Assembly (NCBI GenBank): GCA_977016875.1
Contig: CDRNST010000122.1
Span: 3,472,001 to 3,536,000, forward strand
Reading direction: 5' to 3'
DNA length: 64,000 nt
Origin: Pavona decussata
Lineage: Eukaryota
The position numbers and the translations under genes are program-made. Shown here piece after piece: positions 29,901 through 59,385 of the stretch. The notes under the pieces were generated by a model. That model was given only the letters and a program-made list of their open reading frames with translations, searched no databases and was not told the DNA's origin. The stretch's first letter is position 1; the number at the start of each line of letters is the position of its first letter.

Positions 29901-32900
29901 AAAACTTCGAATAAAAGAGAAAATGTAAAAAATACCTTGCATGGAATGGGAACAGGAGTACAACGACTTGTGTCGCTTGTTGTAGGACACGCTTTTCCGC
30001 CACAGTATGCTCCTAAAGTAACTCTTCGCGTTCTTGTTTTCGTGCCACTGTTTACGCTGCACTGGCCTGTCGGGGCGGAACAGAATCCCCAAGGTGTCCA
30101 ACTGGTGACCTACATAGAAAAGAGACACGTACCTAGTGAGCTGACACGAAGGCTGTAGTCAAACGATAACAGAAAAATGTAACCAAACGTGTACAAACTC
30201 TCAAGGGGACTGTAATAAAAAATAATAGATGTATTTAATCCTGGAAACAAAAAAGGACAATAAGGGCTTCTTTTTTTCAAGAATAAAAGAGTACTTTCGG
30301 AAATAACCTTCGCAAGCTTAGACACGTCTACACGGTGCAGGTCAAATCAATTGTAATATTGATTACCTGACAGTCCCTTGGGCAACAGGGCCCTTGGCAA
30401 GATTTCGTCTCTCTCAAGGTCGGGCATGGGGTACCGCTACAAGAGGCCGCGGTTGTCACTCTTCTTGTGCGAACCTGGTACCCACTCCTTCCGCAAGCTG
30501 CGTTGCAGCTTCCATAGCTTGACCAGCTGGAGACCGCACAGTTCACTGGGCAGCATCTGGAGGTAAAGAAGACTCCATCAAAACGAATACAAGTACAAGA
30601 GATAAGGCATCGAAAGTAAAGCAGTGGGCTTTCCCAAAATGTAAGGATCTGAAAACGGCATATTCTGGTAAAAGTGCAAAAAAATGCACCTCCCTTTCCC
30701 ATTTGTTTCGTTTACAGACGTTAATTCGTTTGTTTGTTCCTATATGCTTGTTTACTGAGGGCAGTTCGTTTGTTTGCTATGTATGCGTTACTATGTGTTT
30801 GTTTACTGAGGGCGATTAATGTGTTTGTTTGTTAGTTATCTGTTTGTTTACTGAGGGAGATTCATAAAATGGGTTTGCTAAGTTTGCTTCAGAGCCTCTC
30901 AGATTTACTGAATAACGTACTGAAAAGCTTATTATTTCCGAATTAGAATCTTGAGCCATGTTTCACTCTCTATACTTCTTTTTATCTGTGGATACAATCC
31001 TAAAGTGCTCAGTAAAGAACACAGTTGACAATTTATTGATTCCTCACACACAAATACAACATAAACAAATTAAACATTAACAAGGCAAGGGAGCCCGAGG
31101 AAGCCAATAAGGCTTATGTAACGGACTACCTTGGATTATTCTATTGTTAAAGAATCATTTAATATCCATCTTAATATATAAATATCTCTAATACCCGAAA
31201 ATAATCGTTAGATTAGAATAAAAAATGAAAAGCAAAAGGAAAGGAAAAAGAAGAAAAAAAGCACACTTAAGTACACTAAAAGAAGTAACATCTTTCTATA
31301 TTGAGAGAAAACTCAAGTTTAGAAGTGAACACAGCAAAACTAGGAGCATTCTGAACTTCAGGGTTAAGAGAATTATACAATTTTGGTCCTTGAAAACGGA
31401 GTGAAAACTTTCTTACGTTTGTTCTATATAAAGTAAGAAGGAATTCTTACTTCTAGTGTTATATGAGTGTACGTCAGAGTGAAGTAAAAACATTTCACTC
31501 GAAACTATCAAGAAGAAGACCGCATTTGTAAAGATACATAATTTTGCCTATTTGGAGCTTGATTATGTTCTCAAATTTTAGACTTTTTAAGTTCTTATAA
31601 ATAGGATCGGTATGTGCGTCAAAACCACTCTTCGAAATTATTTTAATAACCCTTTTCTGGAGTGTAATTAAACGTTTACGACTTCACTGACAAGTAGAGC
31701 CCCAGACACTTGCACAAGCACGAGTGGTTATTATATTTTATTGAGCTTTGTCATACGAAAAAAAAAATACAGAAAGGAAACAAACAAATTACACAGATAC
31801 AAAGTGGAAAGAAAGAGGCAAAACAGCTGGCGAAACCATGACTACCATGGACCAGCTGATACTGTTCATTTGCTGTATCGAGGTGATTTTGACTTTGTGA
31901 CCCTTAGGTTTAAGTCTTTTCTGTGTCTTTTTGAGTCGCAGTAAAAATGTTGCTCTTTCAAAGACTCCTGCGCTGACTTTGCCATGCAATTGAATGGAAT
32001 ACGGTTTAATACCAAAGGATTTGTTGTATGGTGAACTTGCCTTTGGCACAAGAACTGCTGTCAGAAGCAACCATGATGTATGAAAACGTGACATAGTTTC
32101 ATTGAACTGCGGTTGACAATGGAAGCAAGTTGCCAAGAGAGATTGTAAACGCAACACATTTTTAAAGCTTCTGTGAAGCAGACTTTGTACTTCCGTCATT
32201 TAGACATTTTGTGAGTTGGTAAGCAGCTTTGTTGAAATTTTGCACTAATCTTCTTTTCTTTCTATTCTTTTATTGTTTTTATTCTTTCAATCAAATAATT
32301 CACTTTGTAATTTAGTTACAAGCTATAGTTACTTTGTTGCTCTGGATTTTTAGGGTATTGCCGGAATAGCCCAGAAATTTTTGTATTTTAATCTCGACCC
32401 GAACAGACCGCATATCTTTCCACCAAATGAAGAGAATATTGAGGATCACAGGGAAAGACCGGGTGCCTAATTAAACTTCCGCGTAGAAACGCACATGCCC
32501 AAGCAAGCCCCCTTAATATAGGGCCTCTTTCAAAGACTCCTGCGCTGACTTTGCCATGCAATTGAATGGAATACGGTTGAATACGGTTGACAATGGAAGC
32601 AAGTTGCCAAGAGAGATTGTAAACGCAACACATTTTGAAAGCTTCTGTGAAGCAGACTTTGTACTCCCGTCATTTAAACATTTTGTGAGTTGGTAAGCAG
32701 CTTTGTTGAGATTTTGCACTAATCTTCTTTTCTTTCTATTCTTTTATTGTTTTTATTCTTTCAATCAAATAATTCACTTCGTAATTTAGTTACAAGCTAT
32801 AGTCACTTAGTTGCTCTGGATTTTTAGGGTATTGCCGGAATTGCCCAGAAATTTTTGTATTTTAATCTCGACCCGAACAGACCGCAACTCTCTCAACCAA

Positions 32901-35900
32901 ATGAAGAGAATATTGAGGATCACAAGGAAAGACCGGGTGCCTAATTAAACTTCCGCGTAGAAGCTCACATGCTCAAGCATGCCCCCTTAATATAGGGCCT
33001 CTTTCAAAGACTCCTGCGCTGGCTTTGCCATGCAATTGAATGGAATACGGTTGAATACCAAAGGACTTGTTGCATGGTGAACTTGCCTTTGGCACCAGAA
33101 CTTCTGTCAAAAGCAACCATGATGTATGAAAACGCGACATAGTTTCATTGACCCTACGGTTGACAATAGAAGCAACCTGCCAAGACAAGCACTGGGACTT
33201 GCACGTGGTTAGGAAGCGTCACAAACGGACTGTCTCCTGTGACACCTGGAAGAAAACCTGCCGCTCCAAACTCAGGCTGTTCAGCCACAGTAGACACTGC
33301 TGATCTTAGACAAATTCAAGTTTAATGGTGCAAAATACTCAGTTACCTCTTAAAAACCAAAGTGGAATTCATTATACCTACAGCTTGATTTGTTTTTGTT
33401 CTTGTTCTTCATGATATAGTTGTTTTGTTTGGTCGGTTTTCAGAGCCACCAACCTCAAATCTACATATTCCCTAAAAGAGCTTAAAGGGATTAAAGGGAA
33501 GGAAGAAGGGGATTATAACAAAAGGCTTTGTATTGAGTACATTTCATCACGTCTCATCGTTTTCTTCGGAGACCAAAATACCATCATAAGTTAGAGGTGC
33601 ATGACCTCTCAGATTCTTAACTGTTAATTTAGCGCATTATCATAACACAGTATTTACCCTTGACTGGATGAAAGTAACTCATTATGAACGTGCGTGCAAT
33701 CAACCTATGATAAGCGGCTCATTTTATCTCGGGGAATATAGTGTTCGAGTATTATTACGCAGTCTTCGAGATTTAGTATCGTACAGAAAGCCGGGTCGTG
33801 TGAGGGGTCCACGTATTTCTTCCCGATGTTTTTCGCTTTAAAAATAGTGTCTAATCGCTGATGTAAAGAGAAAAACTGCTTTCCTTTGGCTCACACGTTT
33901 CTCACGCTTTCCACCCATTCCATGGTAAAACAGTGTCTAGCCTCACAGATGGGTTTCTCGTGTAGTTTCTTCGAGGAGGATAATTAATGAAATCTAAAAG
34001 TGAGAACTGAAAAGACACAATCTCTATCTTAATCTCAATCTCACATTGCTCTATGGAGCAGGAAGTCTCCAGAAATTTCCATTTCCAAATTTATTATTGT
34101 TGTTGCCGATTGTGTATAATGGTTTGTTGCTGTTAGTGATGCTCTATACCTGAGTGCAAAAGGTCAAGTTTTAAAAATCCTATTATGCGTTAATGTGTCA
34201 CCAGATACTATGTAAATATTCTCCATCTGATACCGCTCGCCTTGTCCCACATCCTTACCCTTTACAGGTTTTCATTGTTACGAAGACACATCTTCATTTT
34301 CGATTCAACCTTAATTTAGAAGCAGGAAAATCGGTACAATGATCTAAAACCTACCGAGCCAAAACTTTAAACGAGGTCTATGCGAAATGGACTATGTGGG
34401 TTATACAAACAGACACCTATTGTGTAACAGTAAGACGCTTAACCTTAATTAAGACAAGCTTAAGGCAAAATTTAGAATTAAGACAAAATTAAGACAACCT
34501 TGGGAAACACATGAAACACATGCATGAATTGGGCAAGCCACCCTTAACCGAGAACTTTGTACCGTCTCGTCAGTTGAGACAGAATGCGTTTGTTGCAAAA
34601 TTCGCTGTTATATAAACTCCGTCATTGAGACGTTGTTTACAAAAGAGCTGAACCCCGTCAATGAACCTGAAAATTGATTCAATTTGCGCGAAAGTATTTA
34701 TTGCAATGAGCTTTCCGATCCGGGCCTTTCCGCGTACGTCGACCTTGATCTGTAAAAGGAAGATCAATTACTTTTGGCCGCAATCTACAACAAGTTAACC
34801 GGGAGGTCGATACATATTTTTAAAAGGATTCTGACCCTTTTATGAGATGAATGAACACGATTTAAAAAAAAAGGCGAATCAATGATTTTTTTGGGGGCCG
34901 GTTGATATAAAATATGATGAAAGAAGATGCACCGAAAAGATCAATAAAAACAAGGTAAGTTTACGTCCTCTGGTTTAACCTTGCTTCAATCTGAAAGATT
35001 TCCTTTCAGTAGAACAGATACACATGTGTAACACGAGACACGACAGCATAATTTAATCAGCAAATTGCACCGTAACGGCCAAAAAAAAAGGTAATAATAA
35101 AATTGAAAAATAAAGATATTTTTAAGCCATTAGCTTAGACCTGCCTAACCACTGGAAAAAAAAAACAGTTTTTATACTGAGAACAAGACACCCTTTGTGT
35201 GGAGGTTATAGCATTTAATGTAATTAACAAGGTGAGGAAAAGGGGATAGACCCGGCAGTTTAAAATTGAAGCTTTAAGAATAAAAAAAACATATCGATGG
35301 GGCTTGCGGTTTGATTTAGAGCAAGTGCTGCGTGAAGTAGTACGATACCAACAAACAATCTGTTTAACCCCCCTCTCCCACAAATGCAAATAAGGTAATC
35401 TTGCCTTATGTTCACGCTTCCGATTTTTTTCCCCTTAATATGTTGATCGTGATCCCCGCGTGCTGTGGGGGCGCGATAGCTCCGAAGAGAAAACGTCGCC
35501 GCAGTAGAACATAATTTGTATCAGCAAAGTAAATCGGCGTTGAAATTGTGAAAGTGTGATAGAAACTCGACGTGCCACCCATTCCGCCAGCCAGTAAGTT
35601 ATACCATTGCATGCTGTGAGTGGCTGACACCGTGGCGAACTGGCATGTGCGCTCGTTTATACTGTAATTCAATGCCAGTATGTCGGCTGGTTCATATCAA
35701 AAAATAAACCTCTTATAAAAAGAAAGCCTTCAGATTATTAAGTTTTCGTGCAGTTGTTCGACCGGTAGTACTGTATCTTTGTCGTTCTAGGATAAAGGGC
35801 AAAGAAATGTGTTTTTTTTTTATCTTTTAAATTTGGAACATAACAATTTTACAGAGGGAACCCGCAGAGAGCTAAGACTTTTTACGACGCGCCGCAACGC

Positions 35901-37237
35901 TTCGCTTAGCTGGTAGATACAATGTAATTATATTATGTAACTTAACGATTATGTAACTAAGCAAAAGTTACTAGTCTGCAACGTATGTCTGCGTAGCAAG
36001 CACTCAGGTACATACCCGGGGGACTCTCATATGAAAGGTGCGCGGATGCTCGTCGTCTCGCTTAGGGGTGTAAATTTCGGATGTTGGTCTCACTTAGGGT
36101 CTTCTGGGCAAAACGCCATTATATTTAACGTGAAGGTCTCGTTAAGGGTTGCATGAGAAGAAATATAAAAATATATATTTGTCTGTGTTTTAAAATGGTC
36201 TCTTTCAAAAAAAAGCTCGGGGCACGCCCAGATTGGTCTCTTTTAGGGGTTTAATTTAAAACTTCCAACGAGCATTCCCGCGCGGAAAATGGAACGAGAG
36301 CAAAAAATTGGAGGCATTCAAAAAGCGAAAAACACTACGGAAAAACTTACTACGCAAGCTCACTCCTAACTTACTAACCACTCCCTACTGATGAAACTCT
36401 ATCTTACCGACAGAAGATAAAGTTGTGGCGAATGTGTCATGCAGAAGAGCTGCTGAAAAACATTTCGGCCATTGCGCACCCTGAACAATGCATCAGTTGT
36501 AATCCAGAACTTGTCCGTTAGAACAAGCGATAAAATGAAGTGGCGGAAACAACTAACAATTATCCGAATTTAAAATTAACCATCAAGTGAACTCACTTGA
36601 AAGGTATTTCATACAAGCAAGAAGCCTTTCGCTAATCAAGAATCATTGGAGCCTCATCTGAAGGCAAAATTCAAAATTTGAATTTTGAAAGAATAACATT
36701 CAAAATTGTCACACCGCTTCAAACAATCCTTCTGTGACTAAACAAAGTAACTGACAGAGTCATTAGGAGAAAATTGGAAAAAAAAAGACTGGCGCTCAAA
36801 CGGTTTGCAACTTACACTCCAGTATTGCAGCTTCGCGTCTGGGTACGAGTTGTTGGGCAAGCCGTGCCACTGCAGCTAGGATTCTGTGTAATCCGCAGCG
36901 CGCGCTTCTGTGTAAACGTGCCACAACCTCTGCATGGAGGACTCCAGGCGTTCCAACTCCATACACAATCGACCGGGCAACATTGAGTGTTGCAGTGCCT
37001 ACTCTCCTTGAGAGCACCAGTACACGATGCTCCGCCGCATATGGCATGAACTGCAATTCCTCTTGTGCGGAGCTGCGTCCCCGTAGCACATGACTTTGTA
37101 CAGGTGCTCCAAGGTTGCCAGTCCCCTAGAGCACAGTCGCGAAAACAACGTCTTCGACGTCTACGGCGCCACGAATCAACGGCGCAAAAAATTGCACTTA
37201 AAAGGAGAAGAGCTATAGACAAGGTGACAAGCTTCAT
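1745..37237 (-). CDS. Giant non-classical cadherin-like receptor (signal peptide, 8x TSP1, EGF, Sushi, ~26 EC, 4-5 EGF, TM, NPxY tail); isoform using the nearest first exon V1, ~3,936 aa, 33 exons
   Basis: Manual exon chain V1 + C1-C32 with GT-AG boundaries and matching phases; summed CDS is 11,811 nt (divisible by 3) ending at TGA 1745. Repeated cadherin motifs (xPEN, DxD, LDYE, DxG, DxNExP/DxNDxP), TSP1 WxxWxxC...RxR motifs, EGF cysteine patterns and a hydrophobic TM segment. Confidence 0.85.
2622..4616 (-). CDS. Constant exon C31: last EC repeats, EGF repeats, juxtamembrane region, TM, NPxY-rich tail
   Basis: ORF 2610-4541 extended to the AG acceptor at 4617-4618; donor GTAAAA; 1995 nt. 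Confidence 0.92.
5442..5671 (-). CDS. Constant exon C30 (cadherin)
   Basis: VAVECQDNGNPP...DVNEAP...DPD; phase 1 to 0. Confidence 0.85.
5725..5850. repeat. (GGAA)n microsatellite
   Basis: Direct inspection. Confidence 0.95.
6153..6456 (-). CDS. Constant exon C29 (cadherin)
   Basis: DCNDPP...LPENSPGG...LDYES; phase 0 to 1. Confidence 0.85.
6789..6913 (-). CDS. Constant exon C28 (cadherin)
   Basis: LDYEAT...ATDNGSPPLS; phase 1 to 0. Confidence 0.8.
7082..7232 (-). CDS. Constant exon C27 (cadherin)
   Basis: VIDTNDPP...YENAT...DQD; phase 0 to 1. Confidence 0.85.
7551..7745 (-). CDS. Constant exon C26 (cadherin)
   Basis: LDFEVQ...ATDSGNPPL; phase 0 to 0. Confidence 0.85.
7960..8136 (-). CDS. 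Constant exon C25 (cadherin)
   Basis: DVNEAP...VNENEPPG...DPD; phase 0 to 0. Confidence 0.85.
8907..8981 (-). CDS. Constant exon C24 (cadherin, 75 nt)
   Basis: VVNHVTL...LDYEQ; phase 0 to 0. Confidence 0.8.
9314..9433 (-). CDS. Constant exon C23 (cadherin)
   Basis: IPENSPVGTVVG...DPDN; phase 0 to 0. Confidence 0.85.
9873..10089 (-). CDS. Constant exon C22 (cadherin)
   Basis: LDYEQ...STDSG...NVNEKP; phase 2 to 0. Confidence 0.85.
10318..10354. repeat. (TAA)n microsatellite
   Basis: Direct inspection. Confidence 0.95.
10530..10737 (-). CDS. Constant exon C21 (cadherin)
   Basis: DRNDPP...VSEN...DQD; phase 1 to 2. Confidence 0.85.
11196..11566. mobile_element. TTAA-flanked MITE (Kolobok-type, AGGGGAAGT...ACTTCCCCT)
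   Basis: TTAA|AGGGGAAGTATTACG ... CATGACACTTCCCCT|TTAA terminal inverted repeats. Confidence 0.8.
11795..12380 (-). CDS. Constant exon C20 (2 cadherin repeats)
   Basis: ORF 11766-12344 extended to the acceptor; phase 0 to 1. Confidence 0.9.
12879..13583 (-). CDS. Constant exon C19 (2 cadherin repeats)
   Basis: Within ORF 12858-13628; AG/GT boundaries; 705 nt. Confidence 0.9.
13985..14290 (-). mobile_element. LINE (CR1/L2-like) 3' fragment
   Basis: ORF2 C-terminal-like motif RTEIAKRSFYYYGCTLFNEL, followed by AATAAA and a (TTC)n tail. Confidence 0.6.
14655..15253 (-). CDS. Constant exon C18 (2 cadherin repeats)
   Basis: Within ORF 14646-15275; phase 1 to 0. Confidence 0.9.
15955..16191 (-). 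CDS. Constant exon C17 (cadherin)
   Basis: FFSTADPDN...LNYE...DSGDPP; phase 1 to 1. Confidence 0.85.
16379..17480 (-). CDS. Constant exon C16 (~3.5 cadherin repeats)
   Basis: ORF 16353-17480; phase 0 to 1. Confidence 0.9.
17507..17899. mobile_element. MITE with GGACGGTGCCTA inverted termini (Kolobok-type)
   Basis: TCAA|GGACGGTGCCTA ... TAGGCACCGTCC|TTAA. Confidence 0.75.
17910..17962. repeat. (GAT)n microsatellite
   Basis: Direct inspection; intronic. Confidence 0.95.
17985..18168 (-). CDS. Constant exon C15 (cadherin)
   Basis: FAARDED...VDYET...DSGNP; phase 2 to 0. Confidence 0.85.
18376..18611 (-). CDS. Constant exon C14 (cadherin)
   Basis: CLSQGGSSCLLNYE...DVNDRP; phase 0 to 2. Confidence 0.85.
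18690..18790 (+). mobile_element. Short LINE ORF2 3' fragment
   Basis: Translates to FMFAAPRLWNMLP, resembling the F..AAP.LWN.LP motif. Confidence 0.45.
19050..19199 (-). CDS. Constant exon C13 (cadherin, 150 nt)
   Basis: LSSSVVDENS...DQD; phase 0 to 0; not in the ORF track, translated manually. Confidence 0.85.
19599..20894 (-). CDS. Constant exon C12 (4 cadherin repeats)
   Basis: ORF 19572-20894; 1296 nt; phase 0 to 0. Confidence 0.92.
21213..21632 (-). CDS. Constant exon C11 (cadherin)
   Basis: ORF 21192-21632; phase 0 to 0. Confidence 0.9.
21948..22097 (-). CDS. Constant exon C10 (cadherin, 150 nt)
   Basis: LSSNSVDENS...DPD; phase 0 to 0. Confidence 0.85.
22481..22778. other. Assembly gap (298 N) inside intron C9-C10
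   Basis: Run of N. Confidence 1.
22790..22900 (+). mobile_element. LINE reverse transcriptase fragment
   Basis: LLLVDLTGVFDTIDHSVLVRRL resembles the RT motif DLSxAFDTVDHxxLL. Confidence 0.6.
23043..23151 (-). CDS. Constant exon C9 (end of first EC)
   Basis: STDNGSPP...DVNEKP; phase 2 to 0. Confidence 0.85.
23560..23756 (-). CDS. Constant exon C8 (first EC)
   Basis: VPENRPRGTKVG...DPN...FDYE; phase 0 to 2. Confidence 0.85.
23916..24115 (-). CDS. Constant exon C7 (Sushi/CCP-like domain)
   Basis: TYPVTCSLGCPKDYSITGASTVTCQTSGQWS...C, then NDPP leading into EC1; phase 1 to 0. Confidence 0.8.
24330..24733. mobile_element. MITE with 16-bp TIRs and a 6-bp TSD
   Basis: CTAGAA|GAGGGGGGTGAATAGG ... 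CCTATTCACCCCCCTC|CTAGAA; internal GATCCGC subrepeats. Confidence 0.85.
25773..25926 (-). CDS. Constant exon C6 (end of TSP1, EGF-like, start of Sushi)
   Basis: NNGCEHKC...CSCNAGYNLAPNNKNC; phase 0 to 1. Confidence 0.85.
26949..27068 (-). CDS. Constant exon C5 (TSP1)
   Basis: VNTWGSWGACSEKCAVGSKQRTR; phase 0 to 0. Confidence 0.85.
27780..28057 (-). CDS. Constant exon C4 (TSP1)
   Basis: SRTRTRR...DCVMSAWSAWSLCSNGCGSG; phase 1 to 0. Confidence 0.85.
28697..28938. mobile_element. MITE with imperfect long inverted termini
   Basis: GGGCCGGGTTGTTCGAAAGCTGATTAACGTTAATC ... GATTAGCTTAATCGGGCTTTGAACCAGGACCC. Confidence 0.65.
29346..29565 (-). CDS. Constant exon C3 (TSP1)
   Basis: MSSWGSWSSC...DCSVSSWTAWSAC; phase 0 to 1. 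Confidence 0.88.
29936..30109 (-). CDS. Constant exon C2 (TSP1)
   Basis: VTSWTPWGFCS...KTRTRR...CGGKACP; phase 0 to 0. Confidence 0.85.
30367..30556 (-). CDS. Constant exon C1 (TSP1); phase-2 acceptor compatible with all five variable cassettes
   Basis: TTCTTTACCTCCAG|A TGC TGC CCA GTG (CCPVNCAVSSWSSY...); donor GTAATC. Confidence 0.88.
31030..31720 (-). mobile_element. LINE (CR1/L2-like) 3' end
   Basis: Minus strand translates VWGST...RLITLQKRVIKIISKSGFDAHTDPIYKNLKSLKF, typical of an ORF2 C-terminus; AATAAA near 31035. Confidence 0.7.
31952..33185. repeat. Local tandem triplication (~470-570 bp units)
   Basis: CTCTTTCAAAGACTCCTGCGCTG recurs at ~31953, ~32525 and ~32999, with long shared flanks. 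Confidence 0.9.
36017..36285. mobile_element. MITE-like repeat at the proximal edge of the duplicated block
   Basis: Imperfect inverted termini (CGCGGATGCTCGT ... ACGAGCATTCCCGCG) and repeated TTAGGGG motifs. Confidence 0.5.
36816..37237 (-). CDS. Variable first exon V1 (intact): signal peptide, W-polyR, 2x TSP1
   Basis: ATG at 37237 (MKLVTLSIALLLLSAIFCAVDS-WRRRRRRRC...), 422 nt, ends CNTG-GT|GTAAGT. Confidence 0.88.
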
Positions 37238-40200: not shown

Positions 40201-41426
40201 ATCATGTTCCCCAATGCCCCACCACAAAGGGCGGATGTTCAACCATTATATTGCAAAGCGCATTTTAAAAAAATCTGGTTTTGAAATTAAACGTTAACAG
40301 ACTTCACTTCGGTATTCCTCTTCGGATTTACAGTCATAAGCAAAAACAAAGGAAGAAGAAGTTGACGAAAATAAAGAATGTCAACAGAATTTATGAAATG
40401 CCTATGCTACATGTTTCAAATTTTCCGTTGATAGAATGTAATACATATGAGTTTTTGGAATGCCAAACGTTCTTCAATAATTTTGTTGCTTTTGCTTTTC
40501 CAATCAACCTAATTATTTTTTTTCTTTTTATTCAAAACGGAAACACCAAACCAATCTAATCTAAAATATGTCATTGGCTCCATCGCCGGTGGCAGTCGGC
40601 AATAGTTTTAATTGGCTCAGTCTAAGCCCGATTTCCCCTTAAGTCCTTTTTAGGTCAAGTGCTTTTTAAGTTACATAACGTCTGTGTTATATAATCACGC
40701 ACGTGTTAACTACTACATACATAACCACCACGCGCGTGCATGGCAAGCCAAACATAACAGAAGTGGGTTGAATGTTTTTAAAAAATCACTCGAGAGATAG
40801 AAACTGCCCCTCCCGATACATGATCAGCGTAAAGTTATACCGTTGTTCTGGCAAATGCGGCTGCCGGAAACGATTTTGGAGAAGGCTAAAGGCCTGGTCT
40901 AATGATGCATGAAAGTTACTGATAATTAATTATAGCCGATGATATGTATCGCCCTCTCACTTGACTGCATCATACACGATCATCAACTATCGTCACTATC
41001 TTTAAATATCATTCAATCCAAAAGAAAAAAAACAACAACAACAACCATATAATTCACTCTGAGCCTGTTCAAATAAGCTAATGATTATCGAGGATGATTT
41101 TCCCGTTTGAACACACGCATGGTAACTGATGAAGGTTAGAAAACAAGAGAGATTCATCTTCGGATGAAAGTGCTGACCATGACAATGTTGTATATTTCTC
41201 GTCGTTCCTTCTAATCCACTTTCTTGTCTAGCTGTCTTCTCTTGCATCAACGCTCTCCGGATTCATTTTCCCGTGCATTCCAACTATATCATTTTCCGTG
41301 CATTCCATTTGCTTCCAGAAGTTCTTCTTTCGGCTTGTTTAAGGCTTTCTCATGTAGGTTCCCCCACTAAACTTTTCAAACAACGAAAATACTGTGTGAA
41401 ACAATGCTAGATAACGCAATACCCAG

Positions 41427-43000
41427 CTGGTCTTCAGAAAGTTTTATGACGTTGTTGGACGGGCACGTGCTTCTCCGGCTAGCAGAAGTCTTAGAAACAC
41501 TGAGCTTCAGTACAACCAAGTGCTGAAGGTCACTTCAAGTTTCTTTGACTCCCTTGGAGTCCTCTGTACCATTCTAGTAGAAACGAAGTGCTGTTTCAGA
41601 TGCTTTACCGAGAGACGTTTAACAGGGATGCGCCGCCCCTACAGCCAGCCACGAGACATTGGAACAGGTGGCTTCAGGACCTGGAAAGAGGTGCAGTGGG
41701 TATTATTACCGCGGTGTATTTTCGCTGGCTCAGAGGAAGAGATTACCTCCTATGCTATTTATGGATTTGAAGAAAAGGAGTATTGTGCTTTTATGTAATT
41801 TCTCCTAGCCTTGAACCAATCAGTGGATATTGCCCGGCTTTGCTGTCATCCAAAACGAGAGTGGCACCTCTGACAAGGCGGTCCATATCACCAGACTCGA
41901 GCTGCTGCGTGGTGTGATCCTTGCTATACTGGTATCTTCAGTACTGAGGAAGCACTTATGTCGCGCGTTCAAATTGACAAGACAAACTTGTAGTTGGACA
42001 CAAGGACGGCAGTCTGTTGTTTCAAGGGGTCAAGGAAGTGGAAGCAGTTTGTCCAGAATCCAGTGAATCAAATTTTCTCTGTAACCGAAGCGTCAATGTG
42101 AAACCACAGTGACCCAGGTGTTAACAACCCTGCAGATGTCGGATCCCATGGAGCTGCCTCCAAGTTGAAGAATAACAAATTGTGGTGGAGAGGACCCTTG
42201 TGGCAATGGCCCAGTTCTGAACAATGCCCAGAATCTATTACCAAAGAGTGTCGCGCAGTGATCTCTCAAGGAGAAGAAAGTACTTGGGGATGCTACTAGG
42301 GTACTTTTGGAAACGCTGGAGCAGAGAGCACATTACAGAGTTGAGAAACCCGGATCGACAGAAATCCACACCTGAAGGAATCATTTCTGTAACTTTAGGG
42401 GACAATGTCATCGTGTTTGGAGACGACCTGCCCTGCAGTCAGTGGCGACTCAGACGAGTGAATACCAGGTTGATGCCAGGTGCTGATGACTGTGCGAGAG
42501 CGGCATTGGTCAAGGTTATCACTAAGAGAGGGAAACCTTTTGGGATGAAGGGACCAATTCAAAGACTGTTTCCCCTCGAAGTACCAGTCATGACCAGTAA
42601 TGAGCAACTTTAGGAGGAGCAGAGACGGGACAGAACCAGGCCATCAACAAGATATGTGGCTGCTCAAAATGCTAATTTGCTGACCAGTGAATTGATTGGG
42701 CAAAGTGGGAGTGTGCCACGGAGTTATTTCGTTACAATCGGAGACTTTCTTTACATGTTTGAACTTCGGACTTGCATGCGGACCGTTACGTTTTTGAGAA
42801 AAGTGATATTATGTGCAACTTGAACTTGTATTTTTGTAATTGAGAGCTTCAGTTGTTGTTATCTTTGTGCGGAACTTTTTGAGAAGGAATTTATTATTTT
42901 GTATCGTTGGAACGTAGAGAATCCCATTATTTTGCGGTGAGCAAATCTATTACAGATGGTTACGCCCATTATTGGATCTGCTAACAACACATCTCTGTTT
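41427..43000 (+). mobile_element. Degenerate BEL/Pao LTR retrotransposon remnant, copy 1
   Basis: Pao-type motifs FDxLG, SKTRVAP, NPAD and FWKRWSREHITELR...KGPIQRLFPLE; purine-rich tract then TG at 42712 as a possible LTR start; many stops and frameshifts; 3' boundary approximate. Confidence 0.8.
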
Positions 43001-47471: not shown

Positions 47472-47892
47472 ACTCCAGTATTGCAGCTCCGCGTCTGGGT
47501 ACGAGTTGTTGGGCACGCCACACCACTGCAGCTAGGATTCTGTGTAACTACCAGCGAGCGCTTCTGTGTAAATATGCCACAACCACTGCATGAAGGACTC
47601 CAGGTGTTCCAACTCCATACGCAATTAACTGGGCAACAGTGAGTGTTGCAGTACTTAGTCTCGCTCAGAGCACCACTGCACGGGTTTCCGCACATTCAGC
47701 AGCAACTGCAATTCCTCTTGTGCGGTGCTGCGTCCCCGTAGCACATGACTTTGTACAGGTGCTCCAAGGTTGCCAGTCCCCTAGAACACAGTCGCGAAAA
47801 CAACGTCTTCGACGTCTACGGCGCCATGAATCCATGGCGCAAAAAAATGCACTTAAAAAGGGAAGAGCTACAGACAAGGTGACAAGCCTCAT
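47472..47892 (-). pseudogene. Variable first exon V2: recent duplicate of V1 with a 1-nt deletion near 47690 (pseudo-exon or assembly error)
   Basis: 421 nt versus 422 in V1; split between ORFs 47665-47928 and 47468-47695; TGTGCGGAAAC instead of the expected TGTGGCGGAAAC; donor GT|GTAAGT intact. Confidence 0.75.
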
Positions 47893-48799: not shown

Positions 48800-50360
48800 T
48801 GCTGGTCTTCAGAAAGTTTTATGACGTTGTTGGACGGGCACGTGCTTCTCCGGCTAGCAGAAGTCTTAGAAATACTAAGCTTCGGTACAACCAAGTGCTG
48901 AAGGTCACTTCAAGTATCTTTGACCCCCTTGGAGTCCTCAGTACCATTCTAGTAGAAACGAAGTGCTGTTTCAGATGCTTTACCGAGAGACGTTTAATAG
49001 GGATGCGCCGCCCCTACAGCAAGCCACGAGACATTGGAACAGGTGGCTTCACGACCTGGAAGGAGGTGCAGTGGGTATTATTACCGCGGTGTATTTTCGC
49101 TGGCTCAGAGGAAGAGATTACCTCCTATGCTATTTATGGATTTGAAGAAAAGGAGTATTGTGCTTTTGCGTACTTTCTACTTGAACCAGGCACTGGATAT
49201 TACCCGGCTTTGCTGTCATCCAAAACGAGAGTGGCACCTCTGACAAGGCGGTCCATATCCCCAGACTCGAGCTGCTGCGTGATGTGATCGTTGCTATATA
49301 GTGGCATCTTCAGTACTGAGGAAGTACTTACGTCGCGCGGTCAAATTGACAAATTGACTTGCAGTTGGACACGAGGACGGCAGTCTGTTGTATCAAGGGG
49401 TCAAGGAAGTGGAAGCAGTTTGTCCAGAATCCAGTGAATCAAATTTTCTCTGTAACCGAAGCGTCAATGGGAACCCAAGTGACCCCAGGTGTGAACAACC
49501 CTGCAGATGTCGCATCCCATGGAGCTGCCTCCAAGTTGAAGGATAACAAATAGTGGTGGAGAGGACCCTTGTGGCAATGGCCCAGTTCTAAACAATGCCG
49601 AGAATCGATTACCAAAGAGTGTCGCGCAGTGATCTCTCAAGGAGAAGAAAGTACTTGGGGATGCTACTAGTGTACTTTTGGAAACGCTGGAGCAGAGAGC
49701 ACATTACAGAGTCGAATCGAATCGACGGAAATCCACACCTGAAAGAATCATTTCTGCGACTGTAGGGGACATTGTCACCTTGTTTGAAGACAACCTGCCC
49801 TGCAGTCAGTGGCGACTCGAACGAGCAGATACCAGGTTGATGCCAGGTGCTGATGATTGTGTGAGAGCGGCAGTGGTCAAGGTTATCACTAAGAGAGGGA
49901 AACCTTTTGAGATGAAGGGACCAATTCAAAGACTGTTTCACCTCGAAGTACCAGTCATGACCAGTAATGAGCAACTTTAGGAGGAGCAGAGACGGGACAG
50001 AACCAGGCCATCAACAAGATGTGTGGCTGCTCAAAATGCTAATCTGCTGACCAGTGAATTGATTGGGCAAAGTGGGAGTGTGCCACGGAGTTATTTCGTT
50101 ACAATCGGAGACTTTCTTTACATGTTTGAACTTCGAACTTGCATGCGAACCGTTACGTTTTTGAGAAAAGTGATATTATGTGCAACTTGAACTTGTATTT
50201 TTGTAATTGAAAGCTTTAGTTGTTGTTATCTTTGTGTGGAACGTTTTGAGAAGGAATTTATTATTTTGTATCGTCGGAACGAAAAGAATCCAGTTATTTT
50301 GCCGTGAACAAATCTATTACAGTTGGCTACGCCCATTGTTGGATCTGCCAACAACATATC
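48800..50360 (+). mobile_element. Degenerate BEL/Pao remnant, copy 2
   Basis: Near-identical to 41427-43000; ORF 48790-49287 contains SIFDPLG and LLSSKTRVAPL. Confidence 0.8.
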
Positions 50361-50949: not shown

Positions 50950-50950
<1 letters not shown>

Positions 50951-50982
<32 letters not shown>

Positions 50983-50983: not shown

Positions 50984-53232
50984 TTGGTCTCAGTTTATGA
51001 TGTAAGTGAGTTATATTCTACGTACTCATTTATCAATTTCAATATTTGAATGTGAGCCGAGATACTTTTCTGAAGAACAAAGACGAACAAAAGATAAATT
51101 GTAAGATTTTCGATTCGCGTGTCATATTACCTGTTGATCATAAGAATGTATTCTAATCGAGAAAGCAAAATATCACAAATAAATAACAACAGTCATCTGA
51201 TATAAATTTTATTTTGGAATCGAAGGCCTCCGCAACAACAATGTTGCATTCGTTTAGCCACCGTGTTTAACACTGCCGAACGCGCGCATGCAGACTAAGC
51301 TGATTTTGTGGGTATTTGAATTAGTTGTTTAGCGCTTTGCCGCGTGTGCCAAAAACTGTAAGACAGGCAAAATCGAGAAGATGGTCTGAAGCAAAGGTTG
51401 ATCAGTCTCGCTCATTTTTTGTGAAAACCAATTTGGCGCGGGTTTGTTTTCTAAGGATTCTGGGTAGAATTTGGTCCCAGACCCTGGAGTCCAAGTGTTG
51501 CATCAAACATGTTGCATTCGTTTGGCCACCTCGTTCAACACTTTTCTATATCGTCCAACAATGTTGAATGGTGTTGCAAGTGTTTTTCTGGGCCTTGACT
51601 GTGCATTTATAACAGTTACTATATGCTGTGAAGTTATTGTGGCGCACACCAACGCTACATTGTCTGCGTTATTTCCTTCCGCAAGAGTGGTCGATACATG
51701 CCGTGGCTTGACATTGTGACAAGAATTTTTTGTGTGATTAAAGATGCACAAAAATGTTCTAAACTTGGTTTGATCTCTTATTGTAGTTACATGGCTCAGT
51801 AATTACAATAGGAAGGGGAGATGAGTTGAAGAGTATTTGCGTAAAATACACATGAGAGGAATATTTCTGTGTACAACGGCAAGGACAACAAAGTCAGAAT
51901 TTTACTAAATGTTTGGCGCGCACATTACCAACATTTGCCTCCATTCCATAGGAAACATTACCCAGAAATTACTCCAACAGGTACCTATTTCTAGGGCCAT
52001 ACCCACCACAAAATATTTACTTCTAATCCTGCTCTGTAGAGAGTGGATGGGCGGTCAGGCGAATAAAAGAAGTCAAGAAATAAAGTAAAACAAAGCGCGT
52101 GGGCCTTTCTCGCCACGGAATTTTGCAGTGACGCAGTTGCTTCAATGTCAGTCATCACACAAAGCGGACAACAAACTTCCTTCCCCCCCCCCCCCCCCGT
52201 CACCACTGGGACGGGGATACTTCTATTAGTAGGCTCATGGGATTATGCTGCTCTTTGGTTCGCATTTTCACGACAGGATTGACTATAATGGGTCGCATTT
52301 TCAACATAGTTGTTAGAATGGTAGTAACCAGCCCTAGTGTCTATCTCAAATTGACATTAGGGGGCATTCATAGCTCATTTAACTGCGCCACAAGTAGTCT
52401 TGTTGTAAATTGACCCTGAAAATCCCTGAGGAGAGTAGACAATAAGATATTTGATATTTGAATGCTGTCACAAATTTTCAACCTCAATGAAAATTGAAAG
52501 GACTTGAAACAGCTTGAATGAGTGAAATGCGTAAAACTCGTCTCCGTCTTGGAAATGACTGCTAGTTAAAAGGAATAGACGTGTAAATACAAAATTATCG
52601 AGTTGGGATTGTGTCATTTACATTCGCAAAATAGTGGAGAACATGGAGTCTATGGGATTGCTAGCGGCACATACGCAGCAAAAGCTGACTCGTGTACCTC
52701 CATCCCAGGATAAAAACAGGGAAATATTCGAGATACGGAAGCGACTGTGGACTTGGAGTCTTCAGAGCGAGCTTCTGTTGAGTATCATTAAACATACAGT
52801 TCTCTATGGCCGAATCGAAAATCAGACAGAAAAAATCCCGCGAAACAGAATTCAAAGCAAGTACATGTACCAGGAACCAAGAGCGCGGGGAAAATGCGAA
52901 AGACAAAAACAATAGGTTCCGGTTTCACATTTTAATTGGTTGACAAAGTGGCGCCAGTTCTTTAAACCAATACGGAGTCTAAAATCAAAACATACGACCG
53001 ATGCAAACATTTCCATCGCGTGTCACTGTTGCCGAGAGACGGTAAAGCGCGACTCTCAAACCGTATTCTAGAGGCTTTATAACTTTGAGTTTTATTCTGC
53101 GTCATCAGTTTTCCCTAAGTAAGCTGAAACCATTTCCTTGCTCAAATTTTGGAGCATTGAATAAACCTCTCCCTAAAATCTCGGGTATATCACCCTTGAA
53201 AACAAAAAGAAAAACAAAGTTTAGCAACTTAC

Positions 53233-53702
53233 ACGCCAGTATTGCAGCTTTGCGTCTCGCTTCGCTTCCTCGGGCATGCCGTTCCGCCGCAGCTAGGATT
53301 TCGCTGAATTCTCACCGTTCGTGTTTGCGTTGACGTCCCGCATGATCCCGAACATGAACCCCAGGCACTCCACGTCCACACGCAATTAACGCGACAGCAG
53401 TGCGTGTTACACGACGCGTACCGCATTCTTGATGGACTGTTAGACGATGGACAGCCTCTACCACCGCAGCTGGGGTAGCTTTTGATTGATTTTCGTTGAA
53501 GAATTCTTCCCCCTCCACAGGGTCGCGAACAACTTCCTACGTTGTACCAATCGCTGAGGATACAATTACGAACAGGGCACCTTCTTCTGCGCCTTCGGCG
53601 CCAAGCCCTCGAATCCATAGGACCAAACAGGACAATCAAACAAGCAAAAAGAACGAGAAAAACCCAAAAATGTTTCTTCATTGCGACGAGAGTGCAGCGC
53701 AT
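53233..53702 (-). CDS. Variable first exon V3 (intact): signal peptide, W-polyR, 2x TSP1
   Basis: ORF 53229-53702 (alternative ATG at 53681); 470 nt; ends CNTG-GT|GTAAGT. Confidence 0.85.
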
Positions 53703-56700
53703 AATAGTAAAAGATCAGCTTACCACTAAAATCTTGATGGATTTTTTAAATTTGATCCCGTCCTAAAGTGACGTTATTTGGCATGCAAGCCTCAACGTAT
53801 TGGGAAACAAAGCTAACAGCTGATGGACGTGGAAATGTTTTGTTTTTACCATGGAAAGAGAAAGGAATAAAATATGACGAAAATACACTACACGTGTTAA
53901 TCGCGTGTGTTTTTCACAGCAGATACGTATACGACTACACAGAAATCAGTTACACTTGGCTCGAGTCAATTTTAAAGTCGTTTGTCAGAATAGAATGTGA
54001 CGAAGGTCTTATCGGGCGCTTTGCAAGACTAAAATACCCTACGGCCTTTCATCTCCAGATTATAAATTTGAGGCATTTAGGATTTCGAAAGAGGTCACGT
54101 ACTATTGCAATAAAAACATTTGATAACCCTTGAGTTACAATGTAAGCTTTTCAGTCAAGCATAGAAAAAGAACTGCCATTCCTATCACCCCTGATGAATT
54201 TCATGTAAATTTCTAAGTCAAGCATATATAAAGAAATGCCATTCCACCGTAAGAGGTTATAACTCAAAACTTAGAGCCCCGTTGTGCAGTCTACAGATTA
54301 ATTAACACGAACCGATTTATTGGCGTGACTATGAGTAGACTCAATCTCATGGGCAAATTTATACCTTACAAATTGGTGCCCGATTTCTTTACCTGTTGGT
54401 GTGGCGCGGGGTACGTGACAATCGGCCTGATTCAAAAAATCTGTCGTTTTAGAAATCGGGCCGATCTTCGTCCGCTCACATATCGGGCCAAATCGGCCGA
54501 TTAATCGAACTACGTGTAAGTTGCTTCCGCTTGAATTTCGCCACCTCTTTCTCCACAAAATCAAAAGTTAGAAATCACTTTGTACAACATTTAAACAGCA
54601 CTGAAGCAACATGCTGCCTAGTAACTTTGATAAGAAGAATTCCAGCCACGGCCTCACTACTGGAGCCATGTTATACCCGACTTAAGTATTCCCTTTAAAC
54701 CTGATCACCGATTTTAAAATATGCTTACCTAAGTGGATATGTTAAAACACGCCGGCGTGAATTCTGCGGTTTCCCAAGTTTAAGTTTTGTTAAAAAACAA
54801 TACCTAGAATACATTAGGAGGGGTTACTGAATTTGACCTTTGTTTATCTTCCGTAAACGTTTTGTAGACAATTGTTGTATTAGAGGGGGTAGGTCACGCC
54901 ATTAAACAATTTTTTTTTCAAATATTATAGAAATCAGCTTCAAGTGGAACAATGTTTAATTAAAAATATCCTCTATAATTTATTCACCAAAACATCGCGT
55001 ACATTTCTTTCAATATGCAATATGCCACTCATTGACATTCACATCTGATCCTCTGACCCATGCTGGGACTAGATTTTCTTTTTCCGAGTATACCTGTGTC
55101 GCTGACTAAAAAGATACCTCTATTATTTATTCACCAGGCTTAACATCGTATTTGATTTTTTTTCTTGTTGTAGCGAACCCCTGGCACTTAAACTCTCTTT
55201 AGTCACTTATGTGAATTCTCGACCTTCTAGCGCTCTTTCCTTTACGGCTCTTTAAAATTGTAAAGCGAAATGAACCAATCAATGTTTTCTTTACAAACAC
55301 TCGCTTACTTTGATTGCTAATTTGAGTGATGTCTTACTAGCTTACCTATAAACATCTTGAAACATTCCGGGGCTCATTAACGATCAGAAGTGTCACAAGT
55401 TCAGCTAAACGCACACATATTTTTTTCTACAAGGCTTGCCGACAGTAAATGAAGGCCTTAAGTGTCATTAGTTGCACTAGGCATTTGCGCATGTTGATGA
55501 AGAATAATTTCTACAAACTGTCGGCGTTGTATTGAAGGGTTATCTAATATTCTACGAGAGCGTAGTTACATGTCTCAATAAAATCAGATAAAGGAGTTTT
55601 CTCGATGGCCTGTAATGAGAGCCGGTCATGCGGTTTGAATTTGTTTGCAGTCTTTCTTTGCAGTGCAGAAGTTGCTAAATCAATGCAGGGAACATTCACT
55701 CAGTGGACTCCCGTGAAGGGCAAAAGCTCACTTCCTGCTCCCCTCGAAACCTACAGTAAAGATTTGTAATTCCTTCCTAGCCCGCACAGACGCTGCTCTT
55801 GAACTAGTAAACCGGTATCAGCTTTCTGACGCAATTTGTACCAGGCACAATTGTAAACAAACCATCCAAGCTATATATAGGATTTAAATAGAGCTGTTTT
55901 CATTTGCCTTTTAGTTCCTTTTGGCACGTGTGCATCGATGTGCGAGGAACTTTGTCAAACCGAAACTTGGCAGAATATTAAGACTCCATTGAAATCGTGG
56001 CCCCTCATTACGTTGTATAGCGTAAGGGAGCACACCTCCCTTCTTCCCTCATCCCTCAAACAGTGACCTGGCAGGAAGGTTTAGGCGATCACCGTCAACT
56101 TTATCCTCGAGCAAAAACTTTGCAATCGTGCAAACAATATTGCCCAACACACCTGTGCACAGGCTTTGTAGACTTCGTAATTTTGTGGTTTAGGGTGATC
56201 CGAACTGTGCCACGGGCCACTCTGAGTGGCCCGTACGCCATCTTGTCGGCCCACCGAACTAACAAGCAATCTGATTGGATGTTGCTTGAATCTTAGCCAA
56301 TAGGCGTTGCTGTTTTATTGTATTGCCTATGGGGTTTCGTCAGCGTTCGTTGAGGTCGTTGTGTGACCGAGCTCTTCCGAGTTTGAGCGTCTTGTGTTCG
56401 AAGAAAAAACAAAATATGGCCGCCATCTTGATTTTGAACATTTCGTGCTTGTTTTTTTAGTTACTTCTGCGGAATTTGAAACATATAACCAAGCAAATAG
56501 AATGATAATTGCCTACTTCTTCTTCGTATGGAAATGGATGTCCTTGGAGTCTGCATTTGTGAATGATTTTTTTCAATAAACTACAACGCGTAATATTTTT
56601 ACATGCTCGTGAAGACGCATGGAAGGAATGAAAAGCTTCAAAGAAGTTTGATTTATATCTGAACGTTTCACTCAATTTTCAACATGCATGATAGATGAAG

Positions 56701-57494
56701 ACAAAGTTTGAAGGTACAGTGACGAATTTAGTTGACGTGTATTTTTGCAATCGGCGTATAAAAGTTAATCTTCATTTCATTTGGCAATGCGGGACCACCC
56801 CCGTGAAATTCGATGGCACTTGTAGGGTTAAGAACTTTATCCATACATAAATTATTTCAGAAAATAATGTTGAAGTGAGTCAACAGAGAGTACACGTTCC
56901 AGTCGATGATAAGAAAACTACATTGTTTATGTTACCGCACGCATGGAGTATGTATTCTAACATTCTGGGATCAACTAGACCGTGATACTATCACCGTCCT
57001 CATGTCCTCAGTAAACCGAATAGTTAATAGTCTTTCAAAGAACACGCGTCTCGCAAAATTTTATTCAAATATCAAGCGGCAGAAATTGCATTATTTCTAT
57101 CGGAAAAAAAGAAGAATTCCGTCCATTGCCAAAGAAAGATTCTGAAAGACTGTAACCTTAAACTACACTTGTATAACCTTATTAAAACCCTTCAGTTTGA
57201 CATAAAAGCACCCAAACTATTCAGGTAACTCTCACATAGATCATCGCAAACAACCTCTATCAACAAACCAACACGAAACACGTTCCTCCGTGGATAAAAT
57301 TCGTTTCACAAAGACATTGTGTTCAAGTGGCGCTTCTTTTCTGTAATATTGCTCTGTGATCGGCTCGGAACGTTTAATGTTTGTCACATTCAAAAAATTA
57401 AATATCACATCCACTTACATGTTAAACAGTAACATTAAGATTTCACCACAAAACGTTAATATCAAACAAGCCGACAAACTCAAATGATACTCAC

Positions 57495-57913
57495 ACGTTT
57501 GTGTTACAAGCCTTGGTCTGTTTTGCAGGGAAGGCTTTTCCGCCACACGAACTGTGCCTTTGGATAACTGGCGTCCGAGAATGGCTTGACATCCCACACC
57601 CCAAGCACTTGCTCCAAGGACTCCATGAATATACACAGTTCACAGGGCAGCAGTCTGTATTTCATCTTCTCGCTTCTCTTAGGTGATAAGCACATCCCCC
57701 TCCACAAGATTCCGTTACAGTTTTTCGCCGCGCACGAGTGGTCAGTCCTCCTCCGTAAGGTCGCGTACACGAGCTCCAACCAGTCCAACTGCTTACTGTA
57801 CAATGCGTGGCGGAACAACGTCTGCGCCTCCTCCGACGACGCCAGGCGTTTGAAGGCGTAAAAACGACAGTGAATATCCCAAGCGCTAAGATTACAGTAG
57901 TGCATCTCACCAT
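57495..57913 (-). pseudogene. Variable first exon V4: in-frame TGA at a conserved Cys plus two other Cys losses
   Basis: AGA TGA AAT at 57662-57664 where V5 has AGA TGT AAT; RPYGGG and KAFPAK versus RSCGGG and RACPAK; frame continues to CNTN-GT|GTGAGT. Confidence 0.8.
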
Positions 57914-58972
57914 TATTGGAAAGCAGCGTTAAAATTTGCTTTAAACGGGTGTTGTTTTTGTCTTTTCTCGAGCTTTAAAGTAGCCTTTACCGCTGGTGTT
58001 AGATACGACGTAGTCAGTGATCATGAGTGAAATTTTCCCGCGTTGTTAAATGAGTGACCTTAATTTTTTATTTCCTGTGGCAGGGGCGGGGCTCGGTTCT
58101 GGTCTAAATCGGATTGAGGACGGTGAAAACTCACAAGTCATGACAAAAGAGAACCCTTAGCCCGTACATGGTACAGCATTTTACCAAACAATGCGGAAAA
58201 ACGTTCTCACGGTTTTAAATACAGTGTTCTTAACTTACCATTATGGTACAGTATTTCAGTACATGACGAGGAAGTGACTCAATGGATAATTAAGTACACG
58301 TTCTAATGGATGATAAAAACTACGCAATATGTGTTGCTATATGAGGTTAATGAGGTTTAGGGCTAAATTGGACGATACGTAAACATTTATTAGACCCTGA
58401 AACTTATCACGTTTCAAACTAAATGGACAAACTACAGACTTCCTTACCAATCCTCAGCCTGGGCACGTTTTTGAGACGTTCTTAAAACGTTTTGGCCAAT
58501 TCATCCTCGACATTCGCAAAATAAAGAAAGAGTGTAAAGACCATTTCATTCGCGGTAAAATCTACCCTTTACAAACAGGATACAAATTACCATGTTTGTG
58601 TGAGAAGAAACTAAATTCGATGCCAAAGAATGACAATGAAAGAGCGTAACGGTAAACTGCAGCTAGCTGCAGCTGCGTAATTTAAATCTTCTGACGGATT
58701 TCAAGGACCTGCTTTCACTGCACCCAAATCAAACTCGTACCAACAGACCGACACGAAACATTCTACGCCATTGCGTGGATATAATTCATTACACAAAGAC
58801 ATAGTAAAAGCTCAACTTGCGCGCATTTTCTGTGGCAAATGCTGTTTAATCGGCTCGGAACTTTTAATACTTGTCCATATTTATAAAATACTTATTATTA
58901 TAATCACCTGATAGCACGATTTCAATACAGAACACTTAAGACAAAATCTGAACAAACTCAAATGATACTCAC

Positions 58973-59385
58973 ACGCCAGTGTTACAAGCCTTGGTCTGCT
59001 TGGCAGGGCAGGCTCTGCCGCCACAGGAACTGCTTCTATAGATAACTGGCGTCCGAGAATGGCTTGACATCCCACATCCCGAGCACTTGCTCCAAGGACG
59101 CCATGAATATACACAATTCACAGGACAGCAGTTTGTATTACATCTTCTCGATTCTCGTAGATGATACGCACATCCTCCCCCACAAGACTCCCTTCTAGTT
59201 TTCCACCGCGTACGAGCAGTCAGTCCTCCGCCGCACGATCGACTACACCGGCTCCACATACTCCAACTGCTAACTCTACAATACACGGGGTAACAACTAC
59301 GACGACGGCGGCGCCAGGCGCTGGAAGGCGTCAAGACGACGAATACCATTGCAAGCGCTAAAATGATAGCAGCGCATCTCACCAT
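58973..59385 (-). CDS. Variable first exon V5 (intact): signal peptide, W-polyR, 2x TSP1
   Basis: ORF 58969-59385; 413 nt; ends CNTG-GT|GTGAGT. Confidence 0.85.

Follow-up and report, generated by a model that had tools for sequence, protein, structure and literature searches.

A stretch of 64,000 nucleotides from the 602-Mb genome of the coral Pavona decussata (G000:C122:3472001-3536000, where C122 is the contig that carries it; termed here the window) harbors a real array of variable first exons, which lies on the minus strand upstream of a shared constant region. Together, the array and the constant region probably constitute one large coral gene that encodes a TSP1-cadherin receptor with tandem alternative first exons. 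The architecture by which variable exons are joined to the first constant exon (termed here C1) is supported both by direct RNA evidence and by synteny. Contig C122 carries at least eight paralogous variable exons, or cassettes, over a span of about 39 kb; of these eight, six are intact and five (V1 to V5) lie within the window. Each cassette encodes, on the minus strand, a start codon, a hydrophobic leader or signal peptide, the motif (A/S)W, 4-8 arginines and two TSP1 repeats, and ends in a phase-2 splice donor after ...CNTG. Positions beyond the end of the window are given in window-style coordinates, that is, in the numbering of the window carried on along C122.

An initial annotation of the window had described five minus-strand cassettes. 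All five are found in the sequence at the stated coordinates, and each has the ATG, signal peptide, W-polyArg stretch, two TSP1 repeats and donor that had been ascribed to it; V2, however, is frameshifted and V4 has an in-frame TGA, and the only intact cassettes in the window are V1, V3 and V5. V1 (36816..37237), the intact first exon closest to the constant region, matches Pfam TSP1_spondin twice and TSP_1. V2 (47472..47892; 421 nt) is a recent duplicate of V1 that is broken by a 1-nt deletion near 47692, which leads to a frameshift and stops; a V2-like open reading frame is intact in another assembly (P0048). V3 (53233..53702) is an intact first exon with a longer leader. V4 (57495..57913) carries its TGA at 57662-57664, in place of a conserved cysteine codon; such a TGA at a cysteine position matches the pattern of a selenocysteine codon, although an ordinary nonsense change from TGC or TGT to TGA is the simpler reading. 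V5 (58973..59385) is, like V3, identified as an intact first exon from its sequence.

A whole-genome search with V5 located three more intact cassettes on the same strand, V6 (window-style 65978-66396), V7 (70816-71246) and V8 (75198-75613), which are placed 6.6, 11.4 and 15.8 kb beyond V5 and which bear out the earlier suggestion that the array continues past the window end. This genome-wide search gave no additional match on C122, and no further cassette was found in window-style 84001-94000. All donors are in phase 2 and of the strong type that had been reported: the sequence is GT/GTAAGT (where the slash marks the exon boundary) in V1, V2 and V3 and GT/GTGAGT in the other five, that is, in V4 and V5 within the window and in V6, V7 and V8 beyond it. 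The strictly conserved W-polyArg stretch lies just after the predicted signal-peptide cleavage site; cleavage by a convertase, binding to glycans or membranes, and sorting are among its possible roles.

The constant region occupies about 2.6-30.6 kb of the window and comprises about 6 TSP1 repeats, an EGF domain, a Sushi domain, about 25 cadherin repeats, about 4 further EGF domains, a transmembrane segment and a short tail. Its first exon, C1 (30367..30556, minus strand), which was delimited using both the sequence and RNA contigs, encodes one TSP1 repeat and serves as the shared splice target. The acceptor of C1 consists of a pyrimidine tract followed by ...cctccag/ATGCTGCCC, in phase 2; any phase-2 cassette joined to it reads NTG-V-CCPVNC, in frame, as had been proposed and as the acceptor sequence confirms. 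C1 has a single match in the 602-Mb genome. It is followed, on the same strand, by further constant TSP1 exons (26949..30109; about 5 TSP1 units, based on tblastn, Pfam and a motif count), by an EGF-like exon (25771-25992; Pfam cEGF/FXa_inhibition), by a Sushi exon (23907-24152; Pfam Sushi), by the cadherin-repeat exons (4448..23780; roughly 25 repeats, based on a map of open reading frames, Pfam Cadherin and a motif count), and by a last large coding exon (2613..4637; Pfam), which contains one cadherin repeat, about 4 EGF domains, a transmembrane-like segment, a short cytoplasmic tail and the stop. (An assembly gap inside the cadherin-repeat exons, at 22481-22778, was kept as is.)

The assignment of this region to the cadherin superfamily is based on tandem repeats with DxNDxP-type calcium-binding linkers, followed by the transmembrane-like segment in the last exon. 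At least 23 linker motifs of the form DxN[DE]xP were counted in the cadherin-repeat exons, and Pfam PF00028 matches every large open reading frame tested, with E-values down to 1.8e-39. A co-linear open reading frame of 668 amino acids (P0056; 62% identity) terminates at the same point as the last large exon. Similarly, the TSP1 assignment, which calls for WxxW and a conserved cysteine pattern, is based on matches of PF19028 and PF00090 both to V1 and to one constant exon, with which the precomputed Pfam annotation of cassette homologs concurs. Neither a start codon nor a signal peptide belongs to the constant region itself, and the initial annotation too had reported no signal peptide there: C1 opens in phase 2, and no exon of the cassette type (that is, with a signal peptide, W-polyArg and TSP1) was found between C1 and V1, where exons without TSP1 similarity are not fully excludable. 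A search of representative proteins with the last exon returned mostly multi-EGF proteins and no full-length gene model, and hence no annotated isoforms; a protein search with C1 alone returned no candidate.

Direct evidence that cassettes are spliced to C1 comes from Logan contigs, which were taken from four runs belonging to four studies and were placed on window:53210-59209, a segment that includes the donors of V3, V4 and V5. Junctions were read from the letters that adjoin a donor in the loose ends of contigs and that were then compared with the window. At the V3 donor (X5@53233; study P2) there is a 255-nt loose end whose adjoining letters are identical to the reverse complement of window 30527-30556, which is the first 30 nt of C1. 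At the V4 donor (X1@57495; study P1) there is a 177-nt loose end whose adjoining letters are identical to the same 30 nt, and at V3 in a further run (X7@53235; study P4) a 31-nt loose end shows the same C1 junction, with a GT>AT variant in the final exon bases. These splices span 22.7 kb for V3 and 26.9 kb for V4, and the cassettes in between are skipped. Because C1 is single-copy in the genome, the junctions represent splices onto the C1 of the window, rather than products of a C1 paralog or retrocopy. Moreover, X1, X5 and X7 behave as RNA, inasmuch as they yield spliced contigs and cover the V3 exon at a depth of 3-66, as compared with 0-3 for the flanking intron. The remaining run, X6, whose library was declared as RNA and made from a related coral, has contigs over parts of both the V4 and the V5 exon, and over the V5-type exon segment 59042-59115 its depth is higher than in the flanking intron.

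The proposal that different cassettes splice to a shared C1 is thus upheld by V3-type junctions (53233) in two studies and by a V4 junction (57495) in a third, and the converse possibility, that only V1 splices to C1, fails. No joint between one cassette and another was seen inside 53210-59209 in the contigs of the four runs. The longest V3-type contig (from X1) begins at 53704, just 2 nt before the ATG, and shows neither a loose end nor a joint on that side; such a start is in keeping with a first exon whose leader is very short.

The mechanism that we envisage is as follows. Transcription would start at one cassette, and the donor of this chosen cassette would join the first available acceptor downstream, namely that of C1, as the RNA contigs show for V3-type and V4 donors. 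Later cassettes would be skipped because they open with a start codon and have no acceptor, which is consistent both with the sequence and with the absence of cassette-to-cassette joints. An intact cassette would supply the start codon, the signal peptide, the W-polyArg stretch and the two outermost TSP1 repeats, and the outcome would be a set of receptor isoforms that are alike except for their N-terminal two-TSP1 tip. This scheme implies one promoter per cassette and the use of V1 and of V5 through V8 as first exons in the same manner as V3, and the resulting tip diversity may contribute to the recognition of cells, matrix, symbionts or microbes.

Other coral assemblies likewise contain such an array linked to the constant region; the related loci were reached via calls of open reading frames. 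(Protein searches with V5 and V1 gave intron-blind calls that end in '...NTGV' and a stop; these led to the related loci and are uninformative on splicing.) In ERZ25073805, contig ctg132826, which is 94-97% identical including introns, carries a V1 ortholog, with C1 6.8 kb downstream (100% identical at the amino acid level) and T2-T4 (97-99%); cassettes of the V5/V6/V8 type, namely a V8 ortholog, one at the V7 position and a V6 ortholog, are found on the same strand of this contig, 36-46 kb upstream. ERZ26692669 contains a V8 ortholog (94%), three V5/V6-type cassettes and then a V3 ortholog (94%), with the order kept. Of two more distant assemblies, ERZ25067556 has three V5-type cassettes followed by a V3-type cassette, and ERZ25071802 has, upstream of C1 (75% at the amino acid level) and T2, two cassettes of the V1 type. 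Hence the array, together with its connection to the constant exons, is older than the split of these corals, and the expectation that related genomes would carry the array upstream of an orthologous C1, in linkage with the cadherin, has been borne out. In two of the ERZ25067556 cassettes (L051:10001 and L051:13065) a pyrimidine run and CAG directly precede the ATG; this could be a splice acceptor, in which case the cassettes of some species might take an upstream leader exon.

For most pairs of intact cassettes the ratio of nonsynonymous to synonymous substitution rates (dN/dS) is 0.18-0.39, and such low values indicate that intact cassettes have been kept as coding sequence by purifying selection. 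In ERZ25073805, V6 and V8 have orthologs that differ from them by only 2-3 nt (99% identity), as compared with 97.4% identity in the flanks. The V1 exon shows the reverse relation to its surroundings: it is 91.8% identical to its sister ortholog (L052:10001-10425), versus 98.7% in the 1 kb upstream and 96.9% in the 1 kb downstream. At 18 of the 35 positions that differ between V1 and this ortholog the base is that of V2. Gene conversion with V2, long-lived polymorphism or a combination of the two is suggested by this pattern; dN/dS for the pair is about 0.9. The sister-assembly cassette at the V7 position is closer to V5 than to V7.

A partial, paralogous array of five cassettes occurs on another contig, C198 (G000:C198:1111781-1137720; loci L003, L010, L013, L018-L020 and L045), for which no constant region was found in the parts read. 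The cassettes follow the same order as on C122: two are frameshifted, V5' is intact, V4' is broken and V3' is intact. V4' (about 1130846-1131133) carries the same TGA at the cysteine codon as V4, so that this stop must be older than the duplication. The possibility that C198 represents an alternative haplotype of the C122 locus was rejected, since non-coding identity between the two is only 86-95%, since C198 has no copy of C1 (nor, in the parts read, any homolog of the constant region), and since the homology, once past V3', resumes only within the V1-C1 intron (window 35942-34120) and goes no further.

This second array accounts for an additional splice junction. V3' is 98.5% identical to V3 (7 of 470 nt differ), and a 601-nt contig in X1, with a depth of 66, runs from a V3-type donor into letters other than those of C1. 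Alternative splicing of the window's own V3 to a second acceptor was considered as an explanation and rejected: the 30-mer at this acceptor has no match in the window at up to 3 mismatches; its letters match C198:1137585, 2.8 kb downstream of V3', with 1 mismatch; and five of the six listed differences of the contig from V3 fall among the seven V3' differences. The terminal exon at C198:1137585 has a good acceptor upstream and reads V-C-stop, and V3' spliced to it therefore yields a secreted protein of about 158 amino acids with two TSP1 repeats. (The 30-nt start of this terminal exon recurs at 7 genomic places with 1-2 mismatches.) The same cassette type has two uses: on C122 it is an exchangeable first exon, and on C198 it makes up a small gene that stands alone.

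Several points weigh against interpreting the C122 locus as a single receptor gene with alternative first exons. The cassettes seen joined to C1 are V3-type and V4 only, and the V4-C1 product would be truncated by the stop within V4. The final 26 nt of V3 and of V3' are identical, so that the junction letters cannot separate the two; V3 alone, however, lies in cis with C1. The RNA evidence consists of Logan contigs rather than raw reads, without quantification, transcription-start mapping or strand, and three of the four runs are labelled RNA by guess only. When the 130 nt preceding each cassette were aligned, no convincing shared promoter element emerged. V7 has a dN/dS of about 0.7, indicative of relaxed constraint, and the count of cassettes on C122 is to be read as at least eight, because window-style 77114-84000 lies outside the stretches read. 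Finally, the commonest V3-type transcript in X1 (depth 66) is that of the C198 paralog, which ends in the short terminal exon and illustrates that cassettes can serve as stand-alone secreted-protein genes.

Some of these same points enter into other explanations of the locus. V1 might be the sole working first exon, with V2 through V8 being leftovers of duplication that have weak promoters and whose donors merely find C1 as the next acceptor, in which case the junctions described above would be noise. Indeed, V2 and V4 are broken and yet V4 is spliced to C1, so that splicing alone is no proof of function; the relaxed constraint on V7 is likewise in keeping with this explanation, as is the unspliced V4 contig in X1, whose depth is only 5. 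Nonetheless, we consider it unlikely, given that V3, V5, V6 and V8 have remained intact, at dN/dS values of 0.2-0.4, that the V6 and V8 orthologs in ERZ25073805 are more similar than their flanks, that the order of V5/6/8-type, V3-type and V1-type cassettes is kept in more distant corals, and that the V3-type-C1 junction recurs in two separate studies. In another explanation, one promoter and a non-coding leader exon would lie upstream of V8, and the cassettes would be mutually exclusive internal exons among which splicing, rather than the promoter, makes the choice, as in insect Dscam1. The pyrimidine run and CAG just before the ATG of two cassettes in the more distant coral (L051), which could be an acceptor, would be in keeping with such an arrangement, but nothing comparable is seen directly before the ATG of the window cassettes, each cassette has its own start codon and signal peptide, and the V3-type contig ends 2 nt upstream of the ATG, where it shows neither a loose end nor a joint; this arrangement is highly improbable.

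The C198 transcript raises a further alternative, namely that the cassettes are mainly independent small genes for secreted, TSP1-only proteins, which would end either by read-through into the intron or in a short terminal exon, and that splicing to the cadherin is a by-product of their upstream position. Consistent with this are the splicing of V3' to the V-C-stop exon in what is the most abundant V3-type contig of X1, the genome-wide family of first exons that encode a signal peptide, W-polyArg and TSP1, the immediate stop that every cassette's phase-2 GT/GTRAGT donor gives if left unspliced, and the expansion of TSR-only proteins in anthozoans (PMC5446238). Against it, the window does not contain the C198 terminal exon, and homology to C198 ends at window 34120. 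Between the window cassettes, moreover, there is no TSP1 exon, no other domain-bearing exon and no poly(A)-type terminal exon, but only Pao fragments and a dispersed repeat (which agrees with the initial annotation in that no downstream exons belong to V2 through V5), and there are no joints between cassettes in 53210-59209. The constant region, which is without a start codon or signal peptide of its own, also needs a cassette. On balance, small independent genes are a distinctly unlikely explanation of the C122 array, and alternative first exons of a receptor gene are the preferred one.

The intervals between cassettes contain the following elements. A degenerate fragment of a Pao/BEL retrotransposon lies between V2 and V1 (41415..42610, plus strand; Pfam Peptidase_A17 and DUF5641), and a sister copy of it lies between V3 and V2 (48763-49977; Pfam). 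A dispersed repeat of about 620 bp, which has at least 9 near-full genomic copies with 85-98% identity, is inserted between V4 and V3 (56208..56828) and has no counterpart in the C198 array. A transcribed patch at 56224-56757 was considered as an extra exon and rejected, as it corresponds to this repeat; the RNA contigs that cover the repeat in three runs are rich in single-nucleotide polymorphisms and probably come from other genomic copies. In the interval between V5 and V6 (window 61681-62871, plus strand) there is an open frame of 397 amino acids with a weak match to a Mutator-like transposase (PF20700, E 2.6e-4). The V1-C1 intron contains a tandemly repeated segment of about 600 nt (window 31792-33218, minus strand), with three similar open frames and no Pfam match, which is also seen as overlapping matches in the sister assembly (L052:14212-15717).

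Elsewhere in the 602-Mb genome, a module consisting of a signal peptide, (A/S/G)W, 5-8 arginines, a cysteine and TSP1 heads many other genes, with examples at L021 (C93), L026/L031 (C73), L027 (C24), L034 (C178), L035 (C84), L037/L040/L041 (C125) and L038/L039 (C200). Genes headed by the W-polyArg-TSP1 module form tandem clusters on C125, C84 and C200.

Corals and other anthozoans are known to have secreted, TSR-only (properdin-like) proteins, which are expanded in corals, and proteins with TSP1 repeats have been linked to the uptake of symbionts (Neubauer et al. 2017, PMC5446238). Like the cassettes described here, TSR-only proteins have a signal peptide followed by TSP1 repeats, and V3' on C198 appears to encode exactly such a protein; on C122, in contrast, the TSP1 module makes up the first exon, open to exchange, of a transmembrane cadherin. 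The cited survey of anthozoan TSR proteins mentions cadherin 0 times, and in the literature searched no report was found of such a variable-first-exon array in a cnidarian.

The closest resemblance is to the vertebrate clustered protocadherins (Pcdh alpha and gamma), in which, as in the coral locus, tandem paralogous first exons each have a start codon and a signal peptide, and the donor of each is joined in cis, past the variable exons that follow, to one shared first constant exon. Both systems involve adhesion receptors of the cadherin superfamily, and both include pseudo-exons and show signs of gene conversion and of birth-and-death turnover. The two differ in what is varied: a Pcdh variable exon specifies the entire ectodomain with its 6 cadherin repeats, and also the membrane span and some of the tail, and the Pcdh constant exons are cytoplasmic only, whereas a coral variable exon encodes only two TSP1 repeats, and the cadherin repeats, membrane span and tail are constant. 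Moreover, there is no homology between the variable exons of the two systems, and, while Pcdh control involves the promoter element CSE, CTCF looping and stochastic choice, the coral locus is likened to it on exon organisation. Thus the coral locus operates in the manner of a Pcdh cluster without belonging to the clustered protocadherin family, and, its host being a cnidarian, the arrangement most likely arose independently.

The mammalian UGT1A locus, like other genes with multiple variable first exons, likewise has several tandem first exons, with promoters of their own (which are presumed in the coral), joined to common downstream exons. The variable exon of UGT1A carries the part that binds ligand or substrate, as that of the coral would; UGT1A, however, encodes an enzyme of the endoplasmic reticulum rather than a surface receptor, and the gene families are unrelated. 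In chelicerate sDscam alpha and beta, tandem 5' cassettes for N-terminal extracellular domains are joined to constant exons by alternative promoter use; these cassettes encode Ig domains and number in the tens, and sDscam is regarded as convergent with clustered Pcdh. Both sDscam and the coral gene are adhesion receptors of invertebrates, but the coral array has eight cassettes, encodes TSP1 domains and belongs to another phylum and gene family.

Tandem variable first exons that feed one constant region form the basis of neuronal self-recognition in vertebrates, where they occur in the clustered protocadherins; the genes behind tissue compatibility in corals are, to our knowledge, unknown. A tentative extension of the present findings, which we regard as rather doubtful, is that the array is a generator of diversity: individual cells or colonies would use different cassettes, and the exchangeable, fast-evolving TSP1 tip would act as a recognition code for self versus non-self tissue, cell identity, symbionts or microbes, making the array an independently arisen cnidarian counterpart of the clustered protocadherins or Dscam. 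If this were true, the divergence of V1 (8%, as compared with 1-3% in the flanks) and its mosaic relation to V2 would reflect balancing or diversifying evolution of a recognition surface. The comparison of C122 with C198, where the same cassettes belong to a membrane receptor and to a stand-alone gene for a secreted protein, respectively, is provided by nature. More generally, the presence of the same logic in a coral cadherin with a TSP1 tip would show that diversification of receptor tips has arisen repeatedly, including outside Bilateria, and the locus is a concrete, testable candidate for variable cell-surface recognition in corals.

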